A DNA stretch of 63,336 bases, filler included, from Malacoraja senta (lineage: Eukaryota), in the NCBI GenBank assembly GCA_038087875.1. It is 3 parts of 3 records of this genome, joined end to end, with 100 filler letters (N's around TTAATTAATTAA, not from the genome) between each part and the next. Parts side by side here need not be neighbours in the genome. Positions count along the whole stretch, not along the records: positions 29,254 to 60,924 come from JAXLNO010000763.1; 2 more parts are not named here. One strand, 5' to 3'. A program made the position numbers and the translations under genes. Below are positions 29,254-58,930 of this stretch, piece by piece (position 1 is the first letter of the stretch; every line of letters begins with the position of its first letter). The notes beneath the pieces were generated by a model. That model had not been told where the DNA came from and did no database searches. It saw nothing but the letters and a program-made list of their open reading frames with translations.

Positions 29254-29329
29254 TTTAGCAAACTCAAGCTGATTAAGGGTCGACCAATGTCTCATGAAAC
29301 GTCTTGTGGATTTGCCAGGCTAAGTATTC

Positions 29330-29690
29330 AAAGTTAAGTCAGTTTTATTCATCACATACACCCGAAGGTGCAGTGAAGTGAATTTGCCAGCAGTGATACA
29401 TGTAAAAAGAACACACAATACACAATAAAATTGAACACAACATCCACTACAGCATTCTTCCTGTGGTGGAAGGCAACAAGTTTCAGCAAGTCCTCCATTG
29501 TTCACCCGTGTTCGGGGCCATAACCCCTCCGTAGTCGCCGCTAGGGACGGCCCGATGTACAAGGCCCTCTCGTCGGGATGATCCAAACTCTGACGTTGGG
29601 ACGGACAAACACACTCTGCGGCTTGGAGGTCCCGACTCGGCACTTTCCTACTGGAGACCGCAGCTTCAGGATGTTATAGGCCGCAGGCCA
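29330..29690 (-). mobile_element. Non-autonomous retroelement fragment related to 32120-32800 and 55341-56197
   Basis: Shares CCTTCCACCACAG..AATGCTGT.GTGGATGTT and an ...AATAAA plus microsatellite 3' end. Confidence 0.55.
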
Positions 29691-30144
29691 GCAGTTCTGC
29701 GGTTAAATATAAAAGGATGTTTCAATGTGAATTCTTTCTCCTTATCTGTATTGTAGCATAAACAAAGATGCATAAATCAAAGGTAGATAAAATGCTGGAG
29801 AAACTCAATGGGTGAGGCAGCATCTATAGAGTGAAGGAAAACAAATGTGCTTGCTGATCCTTTTATGTTATTTATATTTATTTATATTTATCATGGAGGG
29901 TGTATAGGGACATAAGGCCTCAAATGCAGAAAATCAACAGAGCGCCCCATCCCACCCCTCTCTCATCTTCCATACCCCTTTTTGCCGTGCAGGCTACAGC
30001 TCATGGCATAAAACTGTAGCATAGTGGATAAAAACAGGATGACTAATGGAGAAGGGAAGGGGGCCCAAAAGAAACTTTGTACCCACTGATAAAATTCCTG
30101 TGAGGCCCTGCGTATACACGCACAAACAGTGTGTGTTGTGAACC

Positions 30145-32022
<1,878 letters not shown>

Positions 32023-33839: not shown

Positions 33840-34270
33840 ATGATAATAATAATCGTTGAAAACATTAGTGCCGTGCTGGTTTCCGACGGGCACGGTGACG
33901 GACGCACCACACATCTCTGTCCTCCATGCAACTGGCAGGCGCCTCTTTTATCTCTACACATGCGTCTTCCATCAACGTCTTCAGCATCATCTTGATTGGC
34001 CGTCCTGGGTCAAGTCTTCCATGGGTGGGTTCCCACAGCACAACCTTGTTTGCTGGCATTTCTGGGTGGCGGAGCCAGTGACCTGCGAGCCTCATCCTTC
34101 TCAACGTGATCTTCTCGGTCAGAGGTGGATTCTCCCCATAGAGCTGGGCGTTAGTGATGTGGTTCCTCCATCTGACATTTTGAACTTTTCCGAGCATTCG
34201 GGTGTAGGTACCATCAAGAGACTAGGACAGTGCTGGAGTGAGAGTCCATGCCTCACACCCGTACAATAAT
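33840..34270 (-). mobile_element. RTE-clade LINE 3' fragment
   Basis: RRMRLAGHWLRHPEMPANKVVLWEPTHG...GRP...MEDRDVW, with an (ATT)n tail. Confidence 0.8.
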
Positions 34271-34455
34271 ATGGTCTCTACAGTTGTACGGAAGGCCAAA
34301 TATTCAAGCTGTAGTTCAGTGACAAGTAGAGTTCTGCAGGGATCTGTGCTGTGACCCTTGCTACTTGTGACATATATAAATGACTTGGACCCTGGTGTTC
34401 AGAAATTACCCAGTCATAACAATTAATCAAATAATGATTTTTATTTTTATTTCAG

Positions 34456-34731
34456 ATTATCACTACGTTCAAGGACAGTTTGGTTGTGAGGTGGACGATC
34501 ACAGTCCCACTGTAGGGATATTGAAGTTGGCTTTTGATGGAAGATATGCATTTAGTTTTGATAAGGACAAGCTAAAGTGGACGGTGCATGGTCCAATAGC
34601 TGAGCCCTTCAAAGAGAAATGGGACAAGAATGAAAAAATAAACCGTTATTTCAAGAGCTTGTTAGAACATGACTGTGTGGATCTATGGCTTACATACTAT
34701 GCAATTGGAAAGACATACCTGACCAGAAAAG
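34456..34731 (+). CDS. MHC class I-like gene, plus copy: alpha2 domain exon
   Basis: Polypyrimidine-CAG acceptor, G|GTGAGT donor, phase 1-1, 276 nt (same length as the HLA alpha2 exon). (D)YHYVQGQFGCEV...LAFDGRYAFSFDKDKLKW...FKEKWD...LLEHDCVDLWLTYYAIGKTYLTRK, with cysteines 63 aa apart as in C101-C164. Confidence 0.92.
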
Positions 34732-35049
34732 GTGAGTTCAGAACAAAGGATGTTGTTTTGTGATGGTAGGCAATGAGTAATATTTCACTCTTGAGGCAAT
34801 GAGTAATATTATATCTGAACCAATCATGACAGAGGGAAAGGTCATTCGGCCCATTGCTTCTATGCTAGTTTTCCATGCAATGTCGACAAACTGTTCCACA
34901 GTTCTCTCTCACAACTTGCACTCAGCTCCCTCGGATTCTCCTTGCATTCAGCTCCTCGACGGATAATTTGCAATATCCAACTAACTCACTGGCTCATCTT
35001 TGGTATATTGGACAAAACTGGAGCACATGGAGGAAGCCAACTGAGTCAT

Positions 35050-35400
35050 AAGGTCATAAGTAATGGCTGCAGCATTAGAACATTCGGCCCATCCAGTCGA
35101 CTTCGCCAGTCAATCATGGCTGATCTAATCTCTCCCTCCTAACCCCATTCTCCTGCCTTCTCCCCATAACCCCTGACGTGCATACTAATCAAGAATTAAA
35201 AATATCCATTGACGGACTCCACAGCCTTCTGTGGCAAATAATTCCACAGAATCACCACCCTCTGACAAAATAAATTCCTCCTCATCTCTTTCCTAAAGGA
35301 ATGTCCTTTAATATTGAGACTATGACCTCTCGTCGTAGACTCTCCCACCATTGGAGACATCCTCTCCACATCCACATCTATCCAAGCCTTTCACTATTTG
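35050..35400 (-). mobile_element. CR1 3' fragment
   Basis: Reverse complement of the CR1 3' UTR and the FFxQRVVNLWNSLP motif. Confidence 0.7.
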
Positions 35401-36660
35401 CTTAAAAAAAAAAATATTTTTATTAGAAGCATGTGCATATCATAATACAAACATTTCTTATATATCAATCCTACTTTGCTAATAGGTGGGAGTCCAGCTA
35501 TCAAATAATTGTGGTCCTCCTTTATCAATTGTATATTAAATCTGCTTCTATTTAGTTTTTTTTTTTTTTATAGATAGAAAGTGAGAAATTAAAAAAAAAG
35601 GCATGATAAAGAAGAATGGAATAATTTACCAATAATACAACTTTGGAGATAGGTCCGTAGGTTATAAAGCATAACTATTCATCTAATCCTGAGCTTGGAT
35701 TTCAGTCAGATTCCTGTGCTGAACCAATTTACCCTTTCAAAAAATCAATAAATGGAGACCATATTCTATTAAATAATTCAAGTTTGTCAATTAAGACAAG
35801 TCTAGTTCTTTCCAAATGTAAGGTCTCTGACATTTCCAAAATCCACATTTTAATTGTGGGGGTTATAGGACCTTTCCAAAATGTTTATATTAATTTTTTC
35901 CCAATTATTATACTATAATCAAGAAAGTTTCTTTGGTTTATTGTAAGTCTTAGGCTTTGTTCTGATATTCCTAATATTATTAGTTTTGAGTCGGGATCCA
36001 ATTGGTATTGACTACTTCAGAAATTATTCTGAAAATGTCCTTCCAGAAATTTTTGATTTTTATACAATTTACAAAGGTATGAGTTAAGTTAGCCTCTAAA
36101 TGCTGGCAATCTATGTAATACTTTAAATTGTATTAAGGCATGTCTGGCATTTAACGAGCATTGATGTATATATTGTAGACTTTCGTCCCAAATATCTTTC
36201 GTTATGGGTTGGCCTAATTCATTTTCCCATGTGTGTCTATATAAAATCCGTCGGCAGGACCTCACTATCTAAGAGGGTATTATAAATATGAGATATTAAT
36301 TTTTCTGTATTAGGATGTTTATTCAAACATTCATCAAAGATTTCTGGTTCCCTAGTTCTGTAATCTTATGTATTTGATTTAATGTAATCTTTAAGTTGTA
36401 AATATCTGAAAACGTTATTTGAGTGGAGTCCGTAAATCTGTTGTAACTCCTGAAATGAAAGAAAAGTGCCTTTCCTATAAAGATGTCCCATCTTTTTAAT
36501 TCCATAATTTTTCCATTGTGTAAAGCCTTTATCCAACATGGAAGGTTTGAATAAAGGGTTGTTTATAATGGGGAGACAGAGTGATAAATTATCCAATTTT
36601 AAAGTCTTTTTTAATTGTTTCCAAATTCGTATACCACTATAATAGAATTTTCACTATAGG
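35400..36660 (-). mobile_element. L1-type ORF2 3' fragment with 3' UTR
   Basis: NNPLFKPSMLDKGFTQWKNYGIKK...FRYLQLKDYIK and downstream C-terminal L1 motifs. Confidence 0.75.
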
Positions 36661-37330
36661 TTTTTTAATGCAATTTTGTGGGAGCAAACATAATTGAACC
36701 AATATCAAAAGGCAAACAGTCTTTCACTATTTTGTATGATTCAATGAGGTCCCCCCTTATTCTTCTAAACTCCAGCGAGTACAGGCCCACTGCCATCAAA
36801 TGGTCATCATATGTTAACCCATTCATTCCTGGGATCATTCTTGGACACCTCCTCTGGATCCTCTCCAGAGCCAGCACATCCTTCCTCAGATATGGTGCCC
36901 AAAATTGCTCACAATGCTCCAAATGTGGCTTGACTGGTGCCTTATAGAACCTCAGCATTACATCCCTGTTTGTAATTGATGTCTTTCATATTAGTTAACC
37001 ATGGATTTTCTTGACCACAGTTGACAGCCCCTAATGGGATTGCATGTCTATCACACATCTCAAAAGAGCACAGCGTTAAGCTTCGAAAGGGCAAAATTTA
37101 CACGAGATGTGCAGGTCAAGTGTTTTTTTGCACAGAGAGAGCTTGATACCTAGAATGCGCTACCAGGAGTGGTGGTAGAGGATGACATGATAATGGTGCT
37201 TAAGAAAGTTTTGGACAGGCTTGTGAATGTGCAGGGAATACAAGGATATGGATCACATGCAGGCAGTGGAGATTAGTTTTGGTTTAGTTTAGAGATAGAG
37301 TATGGAAACAACACCTTTGGGCCACTGAGT
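36660..37330. mobile_element. CR1 fragments (minus ~36660-36965, plus ~37070-37280)
   Basis: KPHLEHCEQFWAPYLRKDVLALERIQRR...RGDLIESYKI. Confidence 0.7.
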
Positions 37331-39547
37331 CTGCACTGACCAGCAATTGCCCATTCACTATTTCTGTCCTACAAGCTAGGGACAATTTACAGAAGCCAAT
37401 TAACCTGCATGTCTTTTGTATTTGGGAGGAAACCGGAGCCCCCAGAGAAAACCCACATGGTGACAGAGAGAACGTACAAACTCCGTCCAGACAGCACTCT
37501 AGTCAGGATCGAACCCGTGTCTCTAATGCTGTAAGACAGCCACTCTATCACTGTGCCTCTGTGTTGCCTCAGTTTAACTTGGTATCCTGTTCCACATGGA
37601 CATTGCAGGCTGAAAGTCCTGTTCTTGTACTGTTCTATGTTCTATATATTCTCATTGGACAGGGCAGGGATATGTTTTCCACTCCTCCAGCCTCCATGTT
37701 GAATACTTCCTCCCAGTTTAAATCTGATTCAATTAGTCAATCCATTTCTCCCTCCGCTCCTGCCCTGATCCCCATTCTATATTTTGAAGTAGTCATTCCC
37801 TTTTTCACTCCCTGGTCTGTCTACTATGCCCACAACTTTCCTCTACTTTCCTGTCTTGGTGCATGCAACATCTATCCATTTACCACTGTCCATAGACCCA
37901 GGTAGTTCTTCAAAGTGAAACAACGTGAAACACTTGGACTTCCAGTCAAATCTACTGCATTTGGTTTTCATGACGTAATCTTCCACATTGCATCAATGAA
38001 ACAAATAGAATGGCTGCTTTCTGGAGAACCTGCATTCAATCCATGGGACTTTCTAAGATTCCTAATTCCTGCCACTCTAATTCTCCATTCAACACCCACC
38101 ATCATCCATCCATCTGTACCTCTTACACTAGGATAACAAGGGTGAAAGTAACCTTGAGGACCAACAACTCAGCTTCTGTCTGGACATGTTGCAGCCTTTC
38201 AAACTCAATTCCACATTCAACGAGTTGCATTCCCTGTCGATAAACAAACTGGTCCTTTCAACTGTTAAGTTGAAGACAGAAAGAACAGATGCAAGAAGTA
38301 TGAAGCAGGATCCCAAGCTGAAAGATTACATAACCATGTCTTCCAGATGCTGCCTGAACCACTGAGTTACACCTGCACATTTTTGTGTTTTTTAAATTAC
38401 AGTAAAGTTATCCACCAGCAAAATCAGGACAGCCTGACCTACTTGACTACTGCAGTATGTGCTGCATTTTATATAACTCTGTTTAGTTTCATGCATGCAG
38501 AGATGCAGTGAAATGGTTTGGATGGAACAGCAGATGCTGGACACCCCGTCCCTTCTCTCCAGAGATGCTGCCTGTCCCGCTGAGTTACTCCAGCTTTTTG
38601 TGTCTATCTGCAGTGAAATGGTTGTTCTGCATTCTCTCCAGTCAAGTCATACTGTACATAAGTACAATTCGTCCTCTTCTGGAACAGCACGCAGAGATCC
38701 ACCACATTCCAGTACTATCTTGCAGCTTTCAAGTCTCTGAGAAGTCTGATTTTGCCCTAAGGAAATACGCAATTTGTAATTTTCTCATGTTAAGGCCCAG
38801 TGTCATAACAGCACTGGATTGATGAAGTAGAGGCGCCTGCCTCAGTTTAAGTTTTTCTGTTTCAAGATTGTGATCAAACCCTCATCACTGAACTGTGTCG
38901 CAGTGCCACCCCATTATGTATCAGTCCCAATTATCTTTCAACATGCTGGAATCACTTGTTCTTTATCCTTTTTAGACTTTTTTCATGAATTGTTCAGCAT
39001 AAACAGTTATGCTACAACAAAGTTAAGCGCAGCTACCACTTTGTTCCAGAGACGTAACAACACAAGAGATAGTGTTGGAAGAATGATCAAACTCACACAT
39101 AGTGGTTATTAGTAACATTGCAGAGGAAACACAAGGTGCTTTCTTCTCAGCATGCTTACTACCAGTCTACCAGAGAGAGAGAGAGAGAGAGAGAGGGCTG
39201 TCTAATAAGCCTGTGGGCGGAGCCACAGTATGAGTGACACTAATCTACAGATAGGCACAGGGATAAGTTTCGGATTATTATTGTCACGTTTAGTTTCGAG
39301 GTACAGCATGGAAATAGGCCTTTTGGCCCACTGAACCTGTGCTGACTAACGACCACCCAAATATTAGTTCTATCCTACACACTAGGGACAATTTACAGAA
39401 GCCAAAAAACTTACAAACCTGCACGTCTTTGAATGTGATGGAACTGTAGCACCCGGAGATAACTCACATGGTCACAGAGAGAATATATGAACTCTATATA
39501 GACAGCACCCATTGTCAGGATTGAACTTTGGTCTGTGGTACTGTAAG

Positions 39548-40589
39548 TAGGTATGTTACAAAACTTACCTTCAGTCGCGCTGTAATTCTGCCACTGGCCG
39601 TGTGCGCGATTTTGGCGCCTTTAAGGGGGGGGCGGGGTTAAAACGCGGTTTCTCCTCCCTTGTCCTGGAAATATTTTGTTGGAGTACAAACCTTCGCTGA
39701 CAAAATCGTTCCTACCGGCGTTTTGTGAATTTTTTATTTTTATTAAATCGTCAATGTCAGCGCTACAGTCATTTTAAAAGCAGCTCCTGAACCGTCAACG
39801 CCGATAACGGGGACGGATTTCACACAATGGACAGGTAAACGAAAGTGCTTTCTTTAAATGTATAAAAGTGCTTCTTAAGAAGCCTTTAATTCACATTTTG
39901 TCATGCGACACGGTGATTTTGTTCCCCGAATTAACGGCAGTATTTTTCATGCCAATACGGGGTTAAATTCACCGCAAATCAACGTTCCAAATGATCGCGT
40001 TCCAGCAAATCCTCACTCGCAAGATGAATTAAATCCCCATTAATTTACAGGTATTAAACATTCAATTCCTTCCATTTGGCCTGTAAATTCATGAAAATTA
40101 GATTTAAAAATTATGTTATATTGTGAATTATTGTGTGAATGTTATTTGGACACTTAGGCTATTTAAAAATGTTAATCTATTCTTAAGAAATTGATCGATG
40201 TTTAGATCTAGTAATTGAATTTTGTAATTAGCTACAATTAGGTAACTAACTAATTATATGCTTTACTTTCATGTCTTCGAAGTAAGATTGTTTCATATTT
40301 GTTTCAGAATGCTTCAATCTATAATACCTGAAAATTTCTTTCAGTTACCATAATTTTTAAGAAAGTTATGGGCTTTTAACTGTCCTCGATCACAGCTTTT
40401 GTGTTAAGTCAATGGAAAAGCAATAGGGAACTAGATGCTAATTTCTGAGTATGATAATGGCCATAACTTTTTTAATACTGAAGATATGAAAGTGAATTAA
40501 GTGTCAAATTAAACTTCTTTTTATGCTTTATCTGATGGGATAAATTGCAGACTTTATTTTTAAAATCTCAAAATTTTGTAACATTGCTA
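39548..40589 (+). mobile_element. TAG...CTA non-autonomous DNA transposon inserted in a V-SINE (alpha2-alpha3 intron)
   Basis: TIRs TAGGTATGTTACAAAA / TTTTGTAACATTGCTA. CTGTAAG occurs on both sides and the SINE resumes as CTGTAAGGCAGCAAC. Confidence 0.8.
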
Positions 40590-41884
40590 CTGTAAGGCAG
40601 CAACTTTCCAGGTAGTTGCATGCTATCCAATTGGATGAGATAACAACATACATATATATGATCAAGTCAACTCAAGTACTGAAGGTAGAGCAAAGGGGAA
40701 GGTACAGAGTGTGGCATATAGTTCTCAGCAATGTAGCACACCAGTTCCATTAGATAAGGGTTTCGACACAAAACATGACACATTCCTTCTCTCCAGAGAT
40801 GCTGCCTGACCCGTTGAGTTACTCTAGCATTTTGTGTCTATCTGCGGTTTAAACCAGCATCTACAGTTCCTTCCTGCATAGTTCCATAAACAAAGTCCAC
40901 TGTCTGTAATGGGGTAGTGGTCAATTGGACAGAACCCTAGCTTATGGAACGATCATTCAGAAGCCTGATTTTCTCCTCGGTTATCAAGTTTCCGAGTAAG
41001 CCATTTGGTCCTCTAACCTGCCCACCATTCAATATGACCATGGCTGATGTTCCTCAGGCATCAACTCCTGTTCGGTGCCAGTTCCTCATTGCACTCAATT
41101 CTCCAATCTTTCAAAAGTTTAACTACCGCCATATTAAATACTTCCAATGATTTTGTCTTCACAAATCTCTCGCGCCAGAGAATGACCACACTCTGCAAAA
41201 AGAGATTTTGTAAACAAATGACTGGTCTCTTTTATCTCTTATTGAAGAGGAGTGAAAATACTGCCAATTTTAAGCTTGCCCCTCCCCAATTGGCCCTCAT
41301 TTCGTAACTTGTCAATTATTTATTATTGTCAATAATATGCCCTAGTGAAAAGATTTGCCGTTGGTATTAGTTTATTATTGTCACGTGAACTGTGATATAG
41401 TCAAAAGTTTGTCTGTGTGTTATCCAATCAGATCATACTACACATGTGCAATCAAGCCATCCACAAGTAGATCAGTGCAAAGAGAAAACTATTCAGAGTG
41501 CAGAATATCGGGTTACAATATCATAGCATTACAGTTACAGAGAAAGTGCAGATCAAAAAGAGTTGCAAGGATCACAATGAGATTGGTTGGAAGATCAGGA
41601 CAACATCTTATCTTACATGAGAATCATTCAGTAGTCCAATAACAGTGGGGAAGAAGCTGTTCCTGAATTTAATGGTACATACTTTCAAACTTTCTTGTGT
41701 ACTGTCTTAACAGGGAGCATACAATCCCTTTTAAACCACGTGTTTGGTTGATGGTGACGAAAGAGGCAAAATGGGGCAGATGTGGACAGTAACTTGGTTG
41801 TTGTAGTAGACTGAAGAATATTTTGTGGTGGGTGACTGTGCAAGTTTTACTGAAGATGAAAATAACCATCTTACTGCCTTGTAG

Positions 41885-42151
41885 TTTCCCCTGAGGTCAC
41901 TCTCGCTGCCCGACCTGATGATCATTCAGTCCTGTACTGCACTGTGTTTGGATTTTACCCACCGGCCCTCAAAGTCAGCTGGTTGCAGAATGGTCAACAT
42001 GTCTCTGAGACGAAATCTTCTGGGGTCGTACCCAACAACGATGGAACATATCATCTAAGGTCTGTCCTTGAGTATGATCCGTATGATGGGAAACAGTATT
42101 CCTGTCATGTCGATCACAGCAGCCTGCCTGGTGGGAAGATCATCATCTGGG
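41885..42151 (+). CDS. MHC class I-like gene, plus copy: alpha3 (Ig C1-set) exon
   Basis: Acceptor CCTTGTAG, donor G|GTAAG, 267 nt, in phase with alpha2. (V)SPEVTLAARPDDHSVLYCTVFGFYPPALKVSW...VVPNNDGTY...YSCHVDHSSL has the C1 cysteines, FYP, the core W and the class I-type PNxDGT loop. Confidence 0.93.
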
Positions 42152-42226
42152 GTAAGAACATTAAATATTCATTCATAGATAATCATTATCTTCTGTTGTT
42201 TCCATTTTAATCATTGTGACTACATC

Positions 42227-43271
42227 TAGGTATGTTACAAAACTTACCTTCAGCGGCGCTGCGGTTGTGTCTCTCCCCGTGTGCGCGACTTTGGCGCCTT
42301 TGAGAGGGGGGCGGGTTTAAAATGCGATATTTCGGCAGCCTGTTCTAAACGATCTTGAACAGGCTAAATAGTTGATGAAGAAAAATCGCTTCGACTGCCA
42401 TTTTATTAAGTTTATTAAAATTAGCGCTTTATAATTTAATTGATGGAGTAAAATTAAAATCATCTTCAAATGCCATAAACGCCGACAACGGGGACGGATT
42501 TCACGCACGGGACAAGGCAAGGTACACCATTTATTTTTTCATATAAACTTGCTTCTTAGGATGCCTTTAATAAAAATTTTAAGTTGCGAAAATGTGATTA
42601 TTTAAGTATACCAACTGGCAGTATTTTGCCTGCCGATATTGGGGTTTAATTCAGTGCCACCGCAGCGTTCCAAACCAGCGCGTTCCACAAAATCCCACTC
42701 GCAAGATGATTTAAATGGCCATTAATTTACAGGAATGAAACACTAAATTCCTTCCATTTGGCCTATAAATTAATGACAATGAGATTTAAAAATAATGTTA
42801 TATTGTGAATTCTTGTGTGAATCTTATTTGGACACTTAGGATTTTTAAAAATGTTAACTTTTTCTTAAGAAATGGATAGATATTTAGATCTAGTAATTGA
42901 ATTTTGTAATTAGCTACAATTGGGTAACTAACTAATTATATGCTTTAATTTCAGGTCATCCAAGTAAGATTGTTTCATATTTGTTTCAGAATGCTTCAAT
43001 CTATAATAACTGAAAATGTCATTAAGTTCTCTTAATTTTTAAGAAAGTTATGGGCTTTTGACTGTCCTTGATCACAGCTTTTGTGTTAAGTCAATGGAAA
43101 AGCAATAGGGAACAAGATGCTAATTTCCGAGTATGAAAAATGGCCAAACTTTTTTAATACAGAAGATATGAAAGTGGATTAGGTGTCAAATTAAACTTCT
43201 TTTTATGCTTTATCTGATGGGATAAATTGCAGACTTGATTTTTTAAATCTCAAAATGTTGTGACATTGCTA
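42227..43271 (+). mobile_element. TAG...CTA non-autonomous DNA transposon (right-arm copy, 75 bp after the alpha3 exon)
   Basis: Same TIRs as 39548-40589, flanked by CATC on both sides. Confidence 0.8.
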
Positions 43272-45889
43272 CATCCCATGTAGTACATCCCACATTCCAA
43301 GATGCTTAAACTTTCTTTGTTTAGTGGTGTTGCTCTAAGTAATCACGTAATCAGCACCCACTCTCCACATGAGCAGAAGACTTTGTCAACAGAAAATATA
43401 TTAAAAGTAAGTAAATAAATAACTAATATACAAGGAAGGAGTATTTGGGATGCTCAGTGGTGGAACTGATATCCATGAAAGGTATGTTTAAATAAAAAAT
43501 GAATCTTTCCTCATGATGTGATTAACAGCAAGGCACTGGGGGAGTACATGCCCCAATCTGAATCAATAGTCCGAAGTGGAAATGATTGAGAGCTTCGTGT
43601 TCCTTGGCATGAATATATCCAATATTCGGTCATGGAATGGCCACATAGCCAAGGAGGCACACCAACACCTCTACTTCCTCAGGAGACTGAGGATATTCAT
43701 CATGTCTCTGGTGACTCCAGCAAACATCTATAGATGCCGCTAGAGAAAGCATGTTGTTGGGTTGCATCACATCTTGATTTGGGAACTGCACTGCCCAAGA
43801 CTGCAAGAATATACAAAGAGTTAAAGATCATCACACAGCCCAGACTTCCCAGTATTGACCCAATCTACACCAGGTTGCCTTGGAAAACAAGACTTATCAC
43901 ACCTTTCTCACATTCCTCCTTCCTGCTCCCATCAGGCAATAGGTACTGAAAGTTGAAAATAAGCACTGCCAGACTCAGGAACACCCCCTTTCCACCTGTT
44001 AACAGGCTTCGGAAGGGTCCTTCCATAATGTAGGTTTAATGCCCGATTCACCTCAACCTCATTGAACATTGAACATTGTCCATGGAACTGATGTGTTACA
44101 ATGCTGAGAACTATATTCTGTACTCTGTATCCTCCTCTTTGCTCTATCTATTGTTTTTGAGTTTTTTATTTATCTATAGTATTATCTAATTTGTTTGGAT
44201 AGCATACAAAACAAACCTTTGCACTGTATCTTGAAACAGCTGACATTAATAAAACTAAACCTAATGAAGTAAGTTCTGTGACGCAAGTTACAGATTCAGC
44301 AACGAAAAATATAACTGCCTGACAAACAGCGATCGTAGTAGTTTGATTCCAGGTATGCTGCACTAACCTACACAAATGCTCACTTTTGAAGATTCCCTCG
44401 AACAATGCACAAATAAGGAATCTGATGTTTCACTCTGAAGACTGTTGACATACTCCAGAACTTAATTTTCAACCTATCTATGTATCATCAGCAATCTAGG
44501 CTACAGCACCATCAGTCCCTTCATCTGCTCTTAATACCAACGATAAGTAGTTCACTTTCTTGCAATGATTCCCATCCTGCAGTTGCAGTTTCCCAACCTG
44601 AACACTCCTTTAAGACTCTGCTTGCTCTTAATTGTTTTTCCATTCATGCTAATTATTACCCCCAATGTCATAAGCCTTTGCAACACTTGATCAGATATCT
44701 TATGAAAATCCAGATATTGTGGCGACATCTGGTGGTCAGGCCACTTATTGCTAGAACCCTCGTCAGGGGAGCTGGGACTATCACGTGAGTGACAGGGTTT
44801 TGGTGGGAGTTGGTGATGAGTTAATCGCCAGTCAACTGGTGTGCCCGCTAACAACGGCAGGAACTTTGCTCAAGTCCTTACTAAACGCGAGTGTGCCAAA
44901 ACTGTATTTCTTTAAAAAACATTGATTTGTTCACGACGTTTGGATCTCTACAATATATTGTATTTCTTTTGTTTCTCATTCCAATTTTGTTACCTATTCT
45001 GCTTTTCCATCATTTTGTTTTTGAATTTTAGGCGTTTCACACCTGCTGCTCGAATATACATTGTCTACGGGTTCCTGTTGCATTTTCAAAGAATTCTAAT
45101 CAATTTCTCAAACAAAGTTTGAAGAAGGGTCCCAAAATGAAACGTCACCTGTCCATGTGTAAGAAGAAACTGCAAATGCTGGTTTACACCGAAGATGGAC
45201 ACAAATTGCTGGAATAACTCAGCTGGTCAGGCAGCATTTCTGGAGAAAAGGAATAGGTGATGAATCCATGTTCGCCAGAGATGCTGCCTGTTCCGCTGAG
45301 TTACTCCAGCATTTTGTGTCTATCATGTATATTCTTTCCACTGACTGATTAGCACGTAACAAAAGCTTTTCACTGTACCTCAATACATGTGACAATAAAC
45401 TAAACTAAAGATTTTGTGTAAATCAGTATCTGCATCTCTTTCTTTCTACAATTTTCCTGTTAATGCCCTGATAATACACTTTATTGTTTTGTTATTACTT
45501 AAATGTTCTGCCATTATTGAAAGGAATCCAATGTTAGTTTATATAGGGTTAAAGCTTTCTGCTTCCAATTCACCTTCTTTCTTGAATTAAGTTGTGACTG
45601 TGATGGTGCCATAGATCATAGAGTTGTACAGAACATATATTGTCCCTTTGCCATGCTTCAGAACTCCGTGATTCAAAACACCATATCATCTTATATACCT
45701 TGAAAAGTGCCAAAGATAGACACAAAATGCTGGAGTAACTCAGCGGTCAGGTAACATCTCTAGAGAAAAGGAATAGATGGCATCTCGGGTCGAGACCCTT
45801 CTTCACTCTGAAGTCTTCAGACAGTGCCCATCTATTTAGCTGCACAGCTTAACAATTGATTTGTAAAATTATGCATTCTTATTTTTCAG

Positions 45890-45999
45890 AAGGAAATAGG
45901 AAGAAAGACAGGCACATAGGCCTTATTGCCGTGTGTGTGTGCTGATATTGCTGGCTATTGTCTTGGCAGTAATTGTTTGGTGGAGAAAAAAGAGGAGAG
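45890..45999 (+). CDS. MHC class I-like gene, plus copy: TM exon, frameshifted (stop TGA 45943-45945)
   Basis: Same splice sites as the minus copy but 110 nt instead of 105. Reads (E)GNRKKDRHIGLIAVCVC*, and the hydrophobic helix is out of frame. Confidence 0.85.
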
Positions 46000-48900
46000 G
46001 TAAGATGGAAAAATTGTGATGCACTGTTGCTAGTAAAGGTATTGGGCTTGAAGAAATGATCGATCTCAAGTAGGATAAGGCAGCAGCTACACCTGAAATG
46101 CCTCGACAGTCACCACTGTCAACTAGCCTTTGTGCTGTTGTTAAATGTTTCTGATAATCAGATATTTAAAAATTGTGAATTCAGTGTAAAAAAATGTTAT
46201 ACATTATGGATTCACTGCCCCAAATCCTAGAAATATCAACGAGTCATTATAAAGTACAGCATGGAAGCAGTCCTTTCGGCCCACCGTGTCCATGCCAACC
46301 ACCAACCCACCTGTTCTCATGAATTCTATCTCATTGCACCTTCTCATCCAGTCACCCACCCACTAGGGGAAATTTACAGTGGCCAATTAAACTATAAACT
46401 GACACATCTTAGGATGTGTGAGGAAACCGGAGCCCCTGGAGGGATCCAATGCGGTTTCACGGAGAACGTGCAAACTCCACATAGATGGCACTCAAGGTCA
46501 AAATTGAACCCGGGTCTGTGTCGCTGTGAGGCAGCAGCTCTACGAGTTGTGACACTGTGCTGATCTGTTGGGGGCTCGCACTGTTCATGATCCAAGTCAG
46601 CTATGAGGCAGATTGGTTGCAGTTTAACATTTACTAGTTTTGTTTAGTTTAATTTAGAGATACAGTAACGAAACAGGCCCAGCGCTGACCAGTGATCCCC
46701 GCACATTAACACTATCCTATACACGCACACCAAGCCAATTAACCTACATACCTGTACGTCTTTGGAGTGTGGGAGGAAACCTTAGATCTCGGAGAAAACC
46801 CACGCGGTCACGGGGAGAACGTACAAACTCTGTACAGACAGCATCAGTAGTCGGGATCGAACCCGGGTCTCCGGTGCTGCAAGGACTGTAAGGCAGCAAC
46901 TCTACCGCTGCACACAGTAGCTGCCACCAAGGCCGCTGTTGCTGGAAAACTCCAAATTAAGTGGGAATGTGAGTAGTGGGAGAAATGGTTCAAGGTGGAA
47001 AGCCGAATGAATGAGCAACAACATGACAGGTGGACTACAATGTGAAACAGGACAGCACAGAGACAGAGACCTGAATTAAATACCGACATCGGCTGTTGTA
47101 TCTGTAGAGTTTGCATGTTGTTCCTGTGACCATGTGGGTTTCCCCAGGTGCTCTGGTTTCCTCCCACATCCCCAAAACATTGTTTGGTAGGTTAGTTGTC
47201 CCCTAGATTGTGCATGATACAATGTGGGGAGAGCTGATGAGAATGTGGGACAACTATAGGATTAGTGTACATGAATGGTTGGTGCAGGTCAGTGGGACAA
47301 AGGCCATGTTTGTATGCTGCATATTTCCATGACTCTATATGATGTAGAAAGATGTTGACTATTTTTGATTTATAAGATTGGGAAAGACTGTGAGGGACAG
47401 TGCTATAGTAACTCAGCAGGTCAGGCAACATCCCTGGAGACCATGGGTAGGTGACAATCTGGTTCGAGACTCTCCAGGCAAATTACAATGGGTATTCCTC
47501 CGCTTAAGTCTGACAGTAGTGTACAGATGCACCTCAACCACTGACTTGCTCAACAAGTGCTTAAATTAGTTGACTTAAAGTATGTTTGGAGTAACATGCA
47601 GCGGTCCTTAAAATCTACCATTTCCCAAATCCCAAGAGAGCTGGATGATCAGGGTTTTAGTGTAATCTATATCACTGATTTCTTGCCTGTGATCACACTG
47701 TTGTAAGATATATTCTGGTGATGAATTGCAGTTCACTTTCCTCCTGTGTAAAGGAGTTATTGTGTTGAATATAACAAGTGGAAGGGAAAGTCAGTGTAGG
47801 ATTTAGAGTTTGTACATAATGCAGCATGGTAGTGCAGCTGGTAGAACTGCTGTCTCACAACGCCAGAGACCCAGGTTCAATCTGGACCTCGGGTACTGTC
47901 TACGTGGAGTTTGCACGTTCTCCTTGTGACTATGTTGGCTTCCTCAGGGAGCTCCGGTTTCCTCCCATATCCCAAAGATGAGCAGGTGTGCAGGTAATCA
48001 TCCTCGGTAAGTCACCCTGATAGTGTAGGGGTGGATGGGAAATCTATTATGAATGGGTGATTGCTGGTTAGTATGGATTTGGTGGCACAAATGGCCTGTT
48101 TACACACTGTATCACTGTTTTCAAGAGAGAGTTAGATTTAGCTCTTAGGGCTAAGGGAGTCAAGGGATATGGGGAAAAAGCCAGATCGGAGTATTAATTT
48201 TGGATGATCAGCCATGATTGTATTGAATGGCGGTGCTGGCTCAAAGGGCCGAATAGCCTATTCCTGCACCTATTTTTTTATGTTTCTATCTTTCTATTAA
48301 ATAAACTAAATTGGAAGACAGAAGGTATTGACTGATGCATCTTCACGCCAGCTGTAAATGTCATAAACTGTGAGAATTGATTGCAAATTTTATACAATGT
48401 TATAAACTAAACTGGGTGATCAAAATGACAGGATGGATGAAGAGCAGAGTTTTCATTGAAATAACAGACGTGCAGCTTTCTCGAGCACTTGGCCTTGGTT
48501 GTGTATAATTTCCTCTTCAAAATACAATGTTCCCAGGCATTGCTGGTCTGAGACACCATTCAGCAACTATATTTCCTGAAATTGAGATTCTGCTTTCATG
48601 GTATCAAGATGTCTAACATCTCCAGCACCCAGATCAGAACCTTGCCAAAACTAAGAATGCAGCAACAATTTAGTCATTGAACATCAACGACATGCATATT
48701 TGAACTGAGGCAATGGTTAGCTTATTATCACTGTAAACCAGTCATGGTCATGGGTCTGCCATCGTGGTCACTATTAGTGAGGGTGATTAACTATCATTTA
48801 GCAGTGAAACGGAAAAGAATTGGCTTTTCAAGCCCACGGAGCCATAGAGTCATACGGCATGGAAATGGGCCCTTTGCCTCAACTTGGCCATGCCAACCAA

Positions 48901-49376
48901 GATGCCATGTTTAAACTACAATTTTCCTGCAATTGACCCATATCTCACTGAACCTTTCCTATCTACAGTGTGTACCTGTCCAAGTGTGTTCTAAATGTTT
49001 TTTAATACCTGCCTCAACTCCTTCCCCTGGAATGTTCTTCCATATTTCCACTTCCTCTGGTTCCGAGTAACTCGTTTCCTTCTCACCTTAAACCTAAGTC
49101 CTCTGGTTCTTGATTACATAAGGCTGGTTAAAAGATTCTGTGCAATCAATCTATCTATGCTCCTTGATTTTATAAACTTCTATAAGATCACCCCTCAGCC
49201 TCTTGCGTACCAAGGACTAAAGTCCAAGCATTGTCATCCTCTCCCTGAGTCGCAGGCCCTGTTAATGACATCCTTCCGATAGTGGAGTGACCAAAACTTA
49301 ACACAATACTCCAAATGTGGCCTCACCAACATCTTGTATAACTGTAGCAGAACATCCCAACTTTTTTATTCAGTAC

Positions 49377-52300
49377 CTTTCTTTTACAATTTTTTTATTG
49401 TTTTTTTTCCAAAAAACAAAAACAAAAATAAAACATAAAAAACAGAGCAAAAAGAATAATGATAAACATAACAATGGTATTGATACATAGGGATCAGGAT
49501 TAAACACATTAATAACAGGTATAAACTAATATGAGACCAGTGTCAAAATACACAATGAATTTAGACCTCTCGGTCTCTATGTAAATATAGTTAAATCTTT
49601 AAAAGGAAACATAAATGTAAAAAAAAGGAAAGATAAAAAGACAAAAAGGAAAAGAAAAAACAAAACCCCCCTAAACTAAAAAAAAGGTTTTAAAAATTGA
49701 TAATAATAAAATAAGAATAAAAATAAAATAAATAAATAAAACAAACAAAACAGAGCAAAACCGAATCTGAACTGAGAAATTCAACAATTTAAGTCTGTTT
49801 GTCGTCAAGTCCGTTCCACCCTATGAAGGTAAAATAATTTTTATAACGGTTAAAGAGGGATCAATTTATGTTGTATGAAAGTGTTCACTAAATTTTCCCC
49901 AAGTCTTATCAAATTTAACCAAGGGTTCAACAATGTCACCTGATTTTTTCTAAATTTAAACATGATATCGTTTCAGAATACCACTGGAGTGTGGTCGGAG
50001 GGTTGGAATCTTTCCATTTAAAGAAAATAAATCTTCTGGCAATTTATGTGGTAAAAGCAATCAACCGATGGGCGGAGTGGGACAAATGAATAGAATCTAA
50101 CATTGGTAACCCAAAAATTGCAGTAATAGGATGAGGTTGTAAATCTATACCTAAGACTACCGAAATAGTATCAACAATTTCTTTCCAATATTTTTCCAAA
50201 AGAGGACAGGACCAAAACATATGGGTCAGTGATGCCACTTCAGAGTTACATCTGTCGCAGGTAGGATTTATATGACGAGAAAAACGAGCTAACTTATCTT
50301 TTGACATATGAGCTCTGTGGACCACCTCAAATTGTATCAAAGCGTGTCTTGCACACATTGAAGAGGTATTAACTAATTGAAGGATCCTCTCCCATTTCTC
50401 TATAAAGAAATTTGGAGTTCTCATTCCCAGTCATTCTTAATTTTATCAAATGTATCTATTTGTAATTTTAAAATCAACTCATGAATAGTCGTTATTAATC
50501 CTTTCTGATAAGGGTTCAACTGTAAAAAAAAATCCAAAATTTCGGGTTGATGTGGTAGCGGAAAAAGGAGTAGTTCCTTTTGTCTAATTTGTAAATATCA
50601 AAAAAAATGTGAAGTAGGTAAGTTATATTTATTGGAGAGTTCGAAAGACATAAAACAACCCTCCAAAATCAAATCACGAAAAGCTACTAATCCCTTCCTC
50701 TTCCATAACAAAAAAACTTGATCAGTACTAGATGGTTGGAAGAGAAATTAGGATAAAATCAGATAGTCCAAAAAACTTACGAAATTGAAACCGTATTCGG
50801 AACGTATGTCTTATTATTGGGTTAGTCATATATTTATTCAATCTCATAATTGTAAAAGGTAACGAGGTCCCTAGAATAGAAGCCAATTATAGCCCTTGTA
50901 AGGAATCACGTTCTAGGTTTATCCATCCAGGGCATTAGGTATCTTCTAAATCTTTTGTCCAAAATGTTAAATAACGAACATTGACTGCCCAATAGTAGAG
51001 TCTAAGGTTCGGCAATGCCAAACCACCAACTTTTTTTGATTTCTGTAGGTATTTTTTACCTAGTCTGGGATTTTTATTCTGCCATATATATGAAGAAATT
51101 TTAGAGTCTATAATATCAAAGAAAGATTTGGAAATAAAAATTGGTATCGTCTGAAATATATACAGAAATTTAGGTAAAATGAACATTTTAATAGCATTGA
51201 TTCGGCCAATTAAGGATAAGGACTTTGGTGACCATTTAATAATAATAATAATAGATTTTATTTATACAGCGCTTTTCAGGACTCAAAGTCGCTTTGCATT
51301 GAGAGTCAGGAATAAACAAAACAAAATAGAGCAGTAAGACAGAGATGCAAAGGGGAGGGGAACATGGGACTAAGGGTATGCAGAGATGAAGAGATGGGTC
51401 TTGAGGCGGGACTGGAAGATGATGAGGGACTCAGAATTTCGGACCAGTTGTGGGAGGGAATTCCAGAGCCTGGGAGCTGCCCTGGAGAAGGCTCTGCTTC
51501 CAAAAGTGCAGAGGTTTGATTTCGGAGTGGAGAGATGACCAGCTGATGTGGATCTGAGGGACCGTGAGGGTTGGTAGGGGGAGAGGAGGTCAGTGAGATA
51601 AGGGGGGGCCAAGTTGTTGAGGGCTTTGTAGATGAGGACCAGGATTTTGTAGATGATCCGGTGGGAAATGGGAAGCCAGTGAAGTTCTTTGAGAACTGGG
51701 GTGATGTGGTGCCAGGATTTGGTGTGGGTAATGAGTCGAGCGGCTGCATTCTGGACCAGTTGGAGTCGGTTGATGCTGCTGGAATTGATTCCAAAGAGAA
51801 GTGAGTTACAGTAGTCCAGTCGGGAGGAGATGAAGGCATGGATGAGTCTTTCAGCAGCGGGGGGTGTGAGAGAGGATCTGCTTTTGGCAATGTTGCGGAG
51901 GTGAAAAAATGATGTTTTGACAACATGGCGGATGTGAGGCTCAAGGGAGAGGGTTGAGTCAAAGATCACGCCAAGGTTGCGGGCCTGAGGAGATGGGGAG
52001 ACAATGGTGCCATCAATAATGAGAGTGGGGTTGTTAATTTTAGTATGTGTTGATTTGGAGCCAATGAGGAGAAATTCTGTTTTGTTACAGGATGTTATGG
52101 TTGATGGTATCGAAGGCTGCACTCAGGTCGAGGATGAGGATATTGAGGGAGCCAGTGTCAGCAGAGGTAAGGAGGTCATTGAGGACTTTCAGGAGAGCAG
52201 TTTCTGTGCTATGGAGGGGACAAAAGCCAGATTGGAGGGGTTCGAATAGGTTATACGCGAGGAGGTGGGAATGAAGTTGTGACGCGACGATACGCTCCAG

Positions 52301-55300
52301 GGTTTTTGAAAGATAGGGGAGGTTTGAGATAGGGCGTTAGTTAATGAGAGAGGAGGGATCAAGACCAGGTTTCTTTAAGATTGGTGTGACAGCAGCAGTT
52401 TTGAAAGCAGAGGGGACAATTCCTTGGGACAATGAGGAGTTGAAAAGATTTGTGAGGTAGGGGCAGAGAGCAGGGAGGCAGGACTTCAGCAGGGGAGTGG
52501 GGAGAGGGTTAAGGGAGCAGGCAGTGGGTTTGGAAGAGCTGATGAGTTTGGAGATTTCAGTAGGGGTGACCGGGTCAAACTGGAAGAGGAAGCAGTGAAC
52601 CGATTTAGTGAACTGATGTTTAATATGGTCAATTAAAGGAATAAAATTAGCTTTAAATAAATCCTTGTGTTTCTTGGTGATCTTAATACCTAAATAAGTA
52701 AAACTTTCGGTAGTCCATCTAAATGGAAACTGTCCATAACTCGAAACAAAATTATTTAATGGGGAGGCTCACCCGTACTAAGATTTAGTTTATAACCAGA
52801 AAAACTACTGAATTGATTAAGTAATGCTACTATTGCCGGAATAGATTTCTCAGGGTTAGAAATAAATAATAACAGATCATCTGCATCAAGAGATATCTTA
52901 TGTGTCTTATTCCCGCGGACAATACCAAAAATATTAGGGGATTCCCTAATAGCAGTGGCTAAAGTTTCCAAAGCAATATCAAATAGTAAAGGACTTAAGG
53001 GACCTTGAAAGAGCCTGAAAAAAAGGGGATCTCTGATTATTAGTAAATACAGAAGCCTGAGGTATAAGATATAGCAGTTTGATCCAAGAGATACATTTTG
53101 GACCAATCTTAACTTTTTCAAGTATATTGAATAAGTATTCCATTCTACTCTATCAATAGCCTTCTCGGCATCAAGTGAGATGACACATTCTGGGGTTTTA
53201 TTAGACGCTGTATATACAATATTTATTAATCTCCTAACATTAAAGAATGAGTAACGATTTTTAATAAAACCTGTCTGATCTTCAGAGATAATTTGCGGTA
53301 AAATCTTTTCCAATCTCATAGGTAATATTTTGGAAAGAATTTTAAAATCTACATTTAACATTGATATAGGTCTATATGATGTCACTTCAGTAGGGTGTTT
53401 ATCTTTTTTTTAAATTAAAGAAATAAAAGCTTCATAAAAAGATTGTGGTAATCTATTCCTTAAAAAGGCTTCTTTAAATACCTTGCATAGCCATTGAGAC
53501 AATAAATTTGAGAAATACTTTAAAAATTCTACTGTTAACCCATCTAAACCGGGAGCTTTACCAGAATTCATTGAAAAAATTGCTTTCTGTATTTCTTCTT
53601 CCGTGATGGGTTCATCTAACAACAGAGACTCATTGTATGGTAAATTTGGTAAGTTCAGTTTCTTTAAAAACTCATGCATTATATTGGAATCAGTAGGAAA
53701 ATCTGATTGGTATAGGGAGGTATAAAATTCCTGAAAGGATTTATTAATTTCGTCATGGTCTACAGTTACTGTACCATCCCGTTTACTCACTTTAGTAATC
53801 TGACGCTTGGCCAACACTGCTTCAATTGATTAGCAAGTAATTTACCAGATTTTTAGCCATTTATATAAAATTTACTTTTGGTTTTAAGCAACTGGTTCTC
53901 AATCGGTGATACTAATAACAAATCATATCTCAATTGAAGTTCAACTCTATTCTTATAGAGCTCTAAACTAGGAGCTTTTGAATATTTTTTATCAATTTCT
54001 TTAATCTCGTCAGCCAATGTGCGTATTCCTTTTTGTGTTTGTTTTTTTAATCCCGCGGAGTATGAAATAATTTGTCCACGAATATATGCCTTAAAAGCAT
54101 CCCAAACTATACCATTGGATATCTCTTCATTAGAGTTTGTCAAGAAGTAAAAAGCAATCTGATCTTTCATAAACTTAATAAAGTTTGAGTCTTGAAGCAA
54201 AGTAGCATTAAATCGCCATTGTTTAGCACTAAACTTGGAATCAGGTAGTTTGATCAATAGTTTCACTGGTGCATGATCAGAAATAGCAATTGTATCATAC
54301 TCACATGCAATGACCGATGGAACTAGCCGAGAATCTAGTATAAAATAGTCGATCCTAGAATAACTATGAAATACATGAGAGAAAAATGAAAATTCTTTGT
54401 CATTTGCGTGTAAGAATCTCCAAATTTCTAACATTCCCGAGTCAAGTAAAAAAGAATTAATAAAATTAGCTGATATATTTGGAAGCACATGATCAATCGA
54501 GGGATTCAAACAGCAATTGAAGTCTCCATCCATTATTAAAAAGTGTTCATTTAAATTAGGAAAGGATGCAATTAACTGTTTAAAAAACTCAGGGTGATCA
54601 ATATTTGGTGCATAGACATTCACCAAAGCCACTTTTTGCCTAAAAAGGACAGCGGTAATCACCAAGAATCTGCCATATGGATCAGAAATTGTTTCATGGT
54701 AAACAAACGGAATTGAGGAGTCAATAAAAATAGAGACTACCTTTCACCTTAGCCTGTAAATTTGAATGAAACTGCTGTCCTCTCCAAAACTTGAAAAATC
54801 GTGACTTGTCATCTTGCCTTACATGAGTTTGCTGAACAAAGATAATCTGAGCATTAAGTCTGTGAAGAACTTTAAAAAAAAATCCTCTTAATGGGATGGT
54901 TCAAGCCATTCACATTCCATGAAAGGATATTAGTAACTTTATCCATATTGCTTGTAAAAATCATGTGGGATGTAATGGGTTAATTTCTTGAAGCCTAAAA
55001 GTTCATAATACTGGATGTAGAAAAATCTAGGGCGGAGCCAGAAGTGATGACATTTCAGCCAACTCTGTAGTTCAGAATTTGCACAAATGGAGTTCACTAA
55101 ATAGGGAACAAAAGACCCCTCCCCCCTCCCACCCCTGTCGAACCCCAAACTGACCAATGGACAGTCAGCAAACTACCTAATCCCCTCCCCGATCCCATCT
55201 CTCCCAGTAACAGCGCTCAGCATAAAAAGAATAATATTTAACCACTACGTCATAACACATTCGTTATTATCTCTTTGAGAGAGAAGGAAAAAAAATACAG

Positions 55301-56715: not shown

Positions 56716-56856
56716 TATGGTTTGTGATTTTTTTACCCACACCCACCCAAAACCACCCTCACCCACTCGAAACCACCCTCACCAACCACACCCACCGGAA
56801 ACCACCCACACCCACCCGAAACCACCCTCACCCACCCGAAAGCACCCTCACCCACG

Positions 56857-57975: not shown

Positions 57976-58294
57976 TGAAACCGCCCTCACCAGAAACCAC
58001 TAACAAAACCACCCTCACCCACCCACACCCACCCACCCTCAACCACCCACACACCCTCAACCACCCTCAACCACCCACACACCCAAAACCACCCTCAACC
58101 CCCCACACACCCTCAACCACCCTCACCCACCCTCAACCACCCACACACCCGAAACCACCCTCACCCACCCGAAACCACCCTCACCCACCCGAAACCACCA
58201 TCACCCACCCGAAACCACCCTCACCCACCCGAAACCACCCTCACCCACCCGAAACTACCCTCACCCACCCGAAACCACCCTCACCCACCCGCAC

Positions 58295-58930
58295 AAAGCT
58301 CCAACCGCCAACCGCCGACCTACCTGCCTTCACCAAGATGGCCGCCGGCTGCCGACCTCACCTGCCCTCACCAAGATGGCCGCCGAATGCAGACCTCACC
58401 AAGATGTTCTCTATCACTCTATGACTAAGTGACTGCAACATTTTACCTTCAGTGTGAAGCAGCATCATCACATTCGCCGCCATTTTGTGTCGGCCTTCAC
58501 ATTTGAAAACAAACCGCCATCGAGCCACTGCCAGCTGAAGCCACGCCCTCGGATCGCCGGTGACGTCACGGCGCAGGGAGGGCGGACGTCACGGCGCAGG
58601 GCGGGCGGGGAGGGCGAACGTCACGGCGCAGTGCGGGAGGGGAGGGCGGGTCATCTTCATCTTGTTCACGCTCCACGTCTCCAACCGCCAACCCCGCCCC
58701 CGCCCGCGACCTCACCTGCCCTCACCAAGATGGCCGCCCGCCCGCCGGTCCCGCCCCCCCCCCCGCCCCCGAGGCCGAGTCTCTACGTCAACCGCATGAA
58801 AATGGCGGCGCGCGGAGAAGCGGCAGTTGGTGACGTCGCTGCCGACGGACTTGAGGTAAATAAATAAATAACTGATGATCAGCGGCTGCAGCGGATTGTG
58901 CGGGATCGGGTCACGTGGGGGAGAAGTGAG
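58295..58930 (+). promoter_or_regulatory. CpG-island-like promoter candidate
   Basis: Very CpG-rich. YY1-like CAAGATGGCCGCC x3, AAAATGGCGGCG (58799-58810) and CGCCATTTTG. CRE TGACGTCA at 58561 with GACGTCAC repeats, plus GC boxes. Confidence 0.6.
58802..58855 (+). CDS. Candidate first coding exon of an unidentified gene (MAARGEAAVGDVAADGLE)
   Basis: AAAATGGCGGCG start context within the CpG island, ending at a GAG|GTAAAT donor (phase 0). No downstream exon was recognised. Confidence 0.4.

Follow-up and report, generated by a model that had tools for sequence, protein, structure and literature searches.

A fragment of a gene for a non-classical class I heavy chain of the major histocompatibility complex (MHC) lies in a 63,336-nucleotide stretch of DNA from the skate Malacoraja senta (assembly GCA_038087875.1; three parts joined end to end, together called the window), in the part spanning positions 29,254 to 60,924 (JAXLNO010000763.1, called the piece). 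Three exons were recognized, encoding the alpha2 domain, the alpha3 domain, and the connecting peptide with the transmembrane segment. The best explanation, to which we give a probability of about 90% with its account of the groove and mechanism included, is that they are exons 3–5 of the skate ortholog of UGA, a single- or low-copy non-classical class I lineage present across sharks and rays. The closest relative (PDB entry 9CH4), the position in the tree, the groove substitutions, and the orthologous locus are all those of UGA. This lineage has already been described and structurally solved, so the lineage of the gene is not new; the window holds one more ortholog, incomplete within the piece, and no new lineage or mechanism. 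A preliminary description of this DNA had held that the chain was not of the classical UAA type and had left open whether it belonged to a known non-classical or CD1-like lineage or to a new one. The first statement is borne out by the match to 9CH4, the placement in the UGA clade, and the 32% identity of the skate ortholog to the UAA structure 6LUP, and the answer to the second is a known lineage, UGA.

Assignment to the UGA lineage

A search of all PDB chains returned 9ch4_A as the best match to both domains (alpha2, 4.2e-34; alpha3, 1e-32), an entry titled 'Crystal structure of shark nonclassical MHC CLASS I, UGA' and released on 2026-03-18. The next alpha2 matches began at 7e-12, with chicken BF2, MR1, ZAG, and fish class I at about 1e-11 and the shark classical chain 6lup_A at 1.9e-08, and 9CH4 was the sole close solved relative of the window's alpha2 among the best 60 PDB matches. 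The full-length protein of Amblyraja aligned with 9ch4 without gaps over 266 residues (8.6e-118). When an AlphaFold2 model of the Amblyraja ectodomain (pLDDT 92) was used in a PDB fold search, 9CH4 was matched with TM scores of 0.90/0.92, a Z score of 31.1, and 58% identity, followed by chicken BF2, chicken YF1*7.1, shark UAA (6LUP, 32% identity), MR1, and ZAG at Z scores of 26–28.

An exhaustive HMMER scan of 1.84 billion representative proteins with the alpha2 sequence yielded only three clusters (50% identity) at E <1e-30, with identities of 91%, 68%, and 69%, after which identity fell to 28–37%; the three clusters consisted of RefSeq/UniRef models from Leucoraja erinacea and Amblyraja radiata and from Pristiophorus japonicus. 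The whole Amblyraja protein as query retrieved 17 clusters at 90% identity, all of them elasmobranch, and this result was unchanged at a looser E-value. They came from three skates, Pristis (three copies), Mobula, Hemitrygon, Heptranchias, Heterodontus, Pristiophorus, Stegostoma, Scyliorhinus, Cetorhinus, and Mustelus. Over the 180 residues of alpha2 and alpha3, the Malacoraja sequence was 91.1% identical to that of Amblyraja, 90.6% to Rhinoraja, 89–90% to Leucoraja, and 57–72% to the rest.

In a maximum-likelihood (ML) tree (LG+C20, 47 rows), which the preliminary description had proposed as a check, the Malacoraja chain fell within a 16-member elasmobranch clade with support of 100/99; the skate and batoid clades within it each received 100/100. 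The sequence of 9CH4 itself was left out of this tree and is tied to it through the gapless 8.6e-118 match of the Amblyraja protein. The 16-member clade was separate from other class I sequences and had a long stem. Among the skates, the Malacoraja chain was sister to Amblyraja plus Leucoraja, with Rhinoraja outside, and the topology resembles the species tree.

A second Leucoraja erinacea chain, XP_055486430.1 (359 aa, annotated as 'MR1-like, partial'), lies beside a UGA model with an adjoining accession on the same 127-kb contig. In the ML tree it was the sister of the whole UGA clade (99/97). Its best PDB match was still 9CH4 (2.9e-60), and thus the PDB set contains no closer structure. It has G97, L116, A123, L143, and L159 in common with UGA, but it is only about 39% identical and retains D122 and W167; it may be a candidate for the UFA lineage. 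Elsewhere in Leucoraja, several isoforms among the models XP_055521880-55521884 join a UGA chain to a GPR139-like receptor gene located downstream. These fusions are most likely read-through prediction artefacts, and no GPR139-like receptor gene was found in the Malacoraja piece.

Exon structure, constraint, and expression

The positions of the exons and of the other features are given in Table 1. Each of the alpha2 and alpha3 exons has AG just before it and GT just after it, and the two join in one frame at phase 1. The translation of the former matched Pfam MHC_I at 3e-12 over profile positions 93–178 of 179, which is the alpha2 half, and the translation of the latter matched C1-set at 2.1e-19. 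The alpha2 exon is 91% identical to Amblyraja XP_032898133, and the alpha3 exon is 85–86% identical to the skate orthologs. Both junctions proposed in the preliminary description, 34731/41885 and 42151/45890, agree with the annotated skate orthologs and with spliced Leucoraja mRNA contigs. The ortholog is expressed in Leucoraja, where three Logan contigs of 1.4–3.5 kb carry complete spliced open reading frames (ORFs) of 334 aa with small allelic differences. The same description had called all three exons phase-compatible with canonical splice sites; this was correct for alpha2 and alpha3, and not for the transmembrane exon, whose frame is broken.

Table 1. Coordinates of the UGA exons and other features, counted along the whole window
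Feature	Position	Strand	Remarks
Colinear stretch with the UGA loci of Amblyraja radiata and Rhinoraja longicauda	33840..49379	+	blastn; broken by lineage-specific repeats
Alpha2 exon	34456..34731	+	276 nt, phase 1-1, open; exon 3 of the orthologous six-exon gene
Alpha3 exon, C1-set Ig domain	41885..42151	+	267 nt, phase 1-1, open
Read-through ORF past the alpha3 donor	42152..42207	+	reads GKNIKYSFIDNHYLLLFPF, then stop
Connecting-peptide/transmembrane exon	45890..45999	+	110 nt (108 nt in orthologs); reading frame broken
Internal AG, candidate acceptor	45902..45903	+	exon start 45904 would give 96 nt, phase 1-1, transmembrane segment back in frame; direct reading
GT run, frameshift site	45931..45941	+	two extra bases relative to Amblyraja radiata and Rhinoraja longicauda in DNA alignments
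Premature TGA	45943..45945	+	in the alpha3-compatible frame; 54 nt before the exon donor, ahead of the hydrophobic transmembrane segment; from the joined-exon translation
Overlapping long ORFs, three frames	30142-31895	+	75–203 aa each; decayed-transposase look
LINE-type retrotransposon	50047-54743	-	just after the end of colinearity with the other skates
Repeat of about 300 bp, five copies	37270-37570, 39288-39547, 46255-46560, 46631-46911, 47818-48111		in the introns of the window's gene
C-rich minisatellites	56735-56855, 58007-58400		20-nt unit AACCACCCTCACCCACCCGC, about 15 copies

Beyond the alpha3 donor, the short read-through tail GKNIKYSFIDNHYLLLFPF is nearly identical to the C-terminus of the Leucoraja RefSeq model XP_055486429.1, which aligns with positions 41884-42189 at 89% identity. 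The tail is either a conserved intron-retention (soluble) isoform or conserved intron sequence taken up by the gene predictor.

Alpha2 and alpha3 are under purifying selection. The pairwise Nei-Gojobori ratio of non-synonymous to synonymous rates (dN/dS) among Malacoraja, Amblyraja, and Rhinoraja was 0.28–0.39 over 537 nt of the two exons, below the value near 1 that, together with a lack of spliced reads, had been named as telling against the non-classical reading. Changes unique to the Malacoraja copy numbered 6 non-synonymous and 4 synonymous (8/4 and 8/8 in the orthologs), and its replacements at otherwise conserved sites, N104D, M152I, I211L, and T268I, were conservative. Neither dN/dS nor the survey of replacements revealed pseudogene-style decay in alpha2 or alpha3 of this copy.

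The frameshift in exon 5 and the status of this copy

In the frame set by alpha3, the transmembrane exon reads EGNRKKDRHIGLIAVCVC (E-GNRKKDRHIGLIAVCVC with the junction residue included) and then TGA, and the hydrophobic segment LILLAIVLAVIVWWRKKRR sits in another frame. Searches by tblastn with the skate orthologs likewise split this exon into two frames, 45853-45939 and 45933-45998. The frame is broken because of two extra bases in the GT run: in the three-way DNA alignment, GTGTGTGTGTG in the window stands against GTGTGTGTG in Amblyraja and Rhinoraja. Orthologous exon 5 is 108 nt long with phase 1-1 and an open frame, and outside the GT run the Malacoraja exon is nearly identical to it (97–99%). 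The preliminary description, which had counted this exon as compatible in phase, missed the frameshift; the 110-nt length and the stop ahead of the transmembrane segment contradict it.

The frameshift may reflect an assembly error, mark a null allele, or give a soluble form. A consensus error would leave an ordinary gene; we see an even chance that the species has an intact, functional gene, the extra bases being an assembly or consensus error or the frame being rescued by a weak alternative acceptor with exon start at 45904. The purifying selection on alpha2 and alpha3 and the near invariance of the rest of exon 5 favor this, as does the internal AG, which would yield a phase-compatible exon encoding the full transmembrane segment. 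However, that AG is a weak candidate for a rescuing acceptor; it lies in a purine-rich stretch 14 nt beyond the strong normal acceptor, and splicing there would put other residues in place of the conserved connecting peptide. Dinucleotide errors are also uncommon in modern long-read consensus sequences, which counts against an intact gene.

If the insertion is real, the anchor would be missing from the product, leaving a soluble chain; alternatively, this would be a null allele or a very young pseudogene. The frameshift would then mark a null or soluble allele of an otherwise universally retained gene. That the copy is a UGA pseudogene or null allele recently inactivated by GT slippage, with the membrane-anchored chain lost in this animal, is a serious prospect, although we rate it somewhat short of even. 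The insertion is missing from both orthologs, whose exons are otherwise 97–99% identical, the TGA precedes the transmembrane segment, a search of the 11.5 kb of repeat-rich DNA beyond 49379, where colinearity stops, did not turn up the last exon, and no annotated protein of this genome was among the protein-search matches. On the other hand, both ectodomain exons (alpha2 and alpha3) are undamaged and their splice sites are conserved, dN/dS on the tip leading to this copy is about 0.4 and no different from the orthologs, the replacements specific to it are conservative, the lineage is kept in every elasmobranch sampled, and a single dinucleotide indel is also plausible as an assembly error. Tentatively, and with more doubt than confidence, we suggest that the insertion is real, which would make this a skate UGA truncated just before the anchor: either a CD1-like lipid binder that is naturally secreted and anchorless, or a gene lost very recently although all other sharks and rays sampled have kept it. 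As assembled, the 2-bp GT expansion would lead to a truncated anchorless chain or to no stable product.

Groove residues and ligand

When alpha2 of the Malacoraja copy was aligned to class I sequences in HLA numbering, it retained Q96, C101, K146, W147, C164, and Y171 and showed the changes D122Y, Y123A, T143F, Y159L, and W167L; the residue calls made earlier by manual alignment all hold. The stretch between C101 and D119 is one residue shorter than in classical class I and that between W147 and C164 one residue longer, and the exon therefore has the canonical length.

A residue table of 16 UGA-clade members and five outgroups placed these changes in context. Y122 and L159 occurred in 16/16 members, L167 and F/L/M143 each in 15/16, and position 123 was A, I, or V in all 16; G97, F99, L114, and L/F116 were nearly fixed. 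The class I chains of sturgeon and lungfish carry D122, F123, T143, Y159, and W167, and 9ch4 carries the residue states of the lineage in the printed alignments. The five substitutions are thus traits of the whole UGA lineage and not special to this copy. Alpha1 of the orthologs retains residues of the Y7 and Y59 types as well as the glycosylation site N86.

Judging from the residues, aliphatic and aromatic side chains make up nearly the whole lining of the groove on its alpha2 side. The polar or hydroxyl residues of peptide-presenting class I are replaced by G97, F99, L114, L116, A123, F143, L159, and L167, and the floor and ends of the groove are therefore hydrophobic, while alpha2 keeps the class I fold with the C101-C164 disulphide and K146, W147, and Y171. 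By homology to shark UGA, an intact product is expected to pair with beta2-microglobulin through its C1-set alpha3 domain, to be anchored in the membrane, and to show a lipid-type ligand at the cell surface. A 2025 review reported UFA and UGA as CD1-like lipid binders from crystal structure and mass spectrometry (PMC12562908), Verissimo et al. described UFA as CD1-like in its binding region (PMC10751288), and the supplement of an MBE paper that mentions UFA/UGA labels genes 'MHC-Ib' only. The hydrophobic groove residues seen here agree with the reported lipid binding of UGA (PMC12562908). The earlier suggestion of hydrophobic groove ends and a possible lipid-like ligand thereby gains support from the shared residues and from that report.

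Of the class I lineages of cartilaginous fish, UGA and its partner UFA are the ones for which a CD1-like presentation of lipids is now proposed. If true, this would place lipid presentation near the origin of jawed-vertebrate adaptive immunity. To this the window adds one skate ortholog, with hydrophobic groove residues fixed across about 16 species and purifying selection confirmed.

Orthologous loci and the extent of the gene

The UGA genes of Amblyraja and Rhinoraja both have six exons, with total spans of 77.7 kb and 31 kb, respectively. Within the colinear stretch, non-coding identity was about 83–94% to Amblyraja and about 82–91% to Rhinoraja, and the exons were 94–95% identical. The intron between alpha2 and alpha3 measures 20.4 kb in Amblyraja, 2.8 kb in Rhinoraja, and 7.1 kb in the window; intron size in this gene is changing fast through repeat insertion.

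Alpha1 of Amblyraja lies 11.3 kb upstream of alpha2. The leftmost DNA of the Malacoraja piece, 29384-29695, matches the Amblyraja intron between alpha1 and alpha2 at a point 6.6 kb downstream of alpha1; because this DNA is still intron-like, the leader and alpha1 exons are expected beyond the left edge and not to have been deleted. At the other end, both relatives have their 13-residue last exon about 1.2 kb beyond the point where colinearity stops. In Malacoraja it has either been displaced beyond the right edge or been lost.

Several observations weigh against the UGA reading as a full account of this copy. Neither the leader nor alpha1 was found in 29254-60924 (stop-free segments of >=70 aa on both strands, and tblastn with eight full-length relatives), and alpha1 makes up half of the groove, so the whole groove of this copy is not judged from alpha2 alone. 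No last exon was found right of 49379, in 11.5 kb of repeats, by local alignment, motif search, or sensitive blastn. Since the transmembrane exon is frameshifted, the copy may make no membrane protein: the 2-bp insertion and the TGA at 45943-45945 interrupt the ORF of a membrane-anchored heavy chain, which bears on the function of this copy and not on its lineage. The literature describes UGA as MHC-linked, in a class Ib cluster near UDA/UEA, and the piece contains no flanking genes, only repeats. Finally, the lipid binding reported for UGA draws on a personal communication in the review (PMC12562908) together with the title of the PDB entry.

Alternative placements among class I lineages

Descent from the CD1 family, as a true CD1 ortholog, is improbable. 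UFA and UGA have been described as CD1-like in groove and lipid binding (PMC10751288, PMC12562908), yet the authors themselves state that orthology is hard to assess (PMC10751288). No CD1 chain was among the best 60 alpha2 PDB matches or the best 50 fold matches, and the nearest folds outside UGA were chicken BF2, YF1, shark UAA, MR1, and ZAG. In the alpha3 PDB search, CD1 turned up solely through the generic Ig domain. CD1 also differs from UGA at K146, W147, Y171, and the Y7/Y59-type residues, all kept in UGA, which counts against a CD1 ortholog.

The classical consensus carries the peptide-terminus anchors T143, Y159, and Y123. A classical UAA-type peptide-presenting gene or a recent derivative of one is refuted. 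In its favor, the chain retains Q96, C101/C164, K146, W147, and Y171, and its overall fold resembles that of classical chains (Z about 27). Against it, T143, Y159, Y123, and D122 are replaced across the lineage, identity of the skate ortholog ectodomain is about 32% to 6LUP against 58% to UGA, the alpha2 score is 1.9e-08 for 6lup_A against 4.2e-34 for 9ch4, and the chain stands in a separate clade with a long stem. The identity and the alpha2 score speak against the nesting with high identity inside UAA that had been named as contrary to a non-classical reading.

Repeats and other elements

The LINE-type (long interspersed nuclear element) retrotransposon encodes an RVT_1 reverse transcriptase at 52759-53409 (4.7e-22), with long flanking ORFs at 53856-54743 and 51373-52122, and is probably part of the insertion cluster that displaced or replaced the last exon. 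RVT_1 was the single Pfam match among ten long repeat-derived ORFs. The overlapping ORFs at 30142-31895 had no Pfam match at E <=0.01 and are absent at this place in the Amblyraja and Rhinoraja loci. The repeat of about 300 bp has more than 10 copies in the Amblyraja locus at 68–84% identity and behaves like a short interspersed nuclear element (SINE); Rfam detected no tRNA or other RNA family in the piece, this repeat included. The proline/threonine/histidine-rich ORFs in three frames of the minisatellites are repeat artefacts.

Comparison with known class I systems

Shark UGA (9CH4) is the closest solved system, aligning without gaps at about 57% identity over alpha2 and alpha3 of the window (58% for the skate ortholog ectodomain) and sharing Y122, F143, L159, L167, G97, F99, and the disulphides. 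It differs in having I at position 123, where the window has A, and the window represents a skate by exons 3–5 alone, with exon 5 frameshifted. The skate orthologs are closer still, with 89–91% protein identity over alpha2 and alpha3, the same exon boundaries, and colinear introns, but their exon 5 is an open 108 nt and is followed by a 13-residue last exon (DYQNIPPNQNVPC or similar), whereas that of the window has 110 nt and a stop.

The CD1 family of tetrapods resembles UGA in its hydrophobic groove and reported lipid ligands, and the same working principle is proposed for both; however, no special affinity in sequence or fold was detected, UGA is MHC-linked according to the literature, and it keeps several classical anchor residues. 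Chicken YF1*7.1 (PDB 3P73, 9EB2-9EB6), which presents lipids and lipopeptides, likewise combines an otherwise classical architecture with a hydrophobic groove (Z about 27), although it is about 30% identical and belongs to an independent lineage. Shark UAA (6LUP), also from a cartilaginous fish, has the same fold and domain order, but it is 32% identical to the skate ortholog and carries the T143, Y159, and Y123 that UGA lacks.

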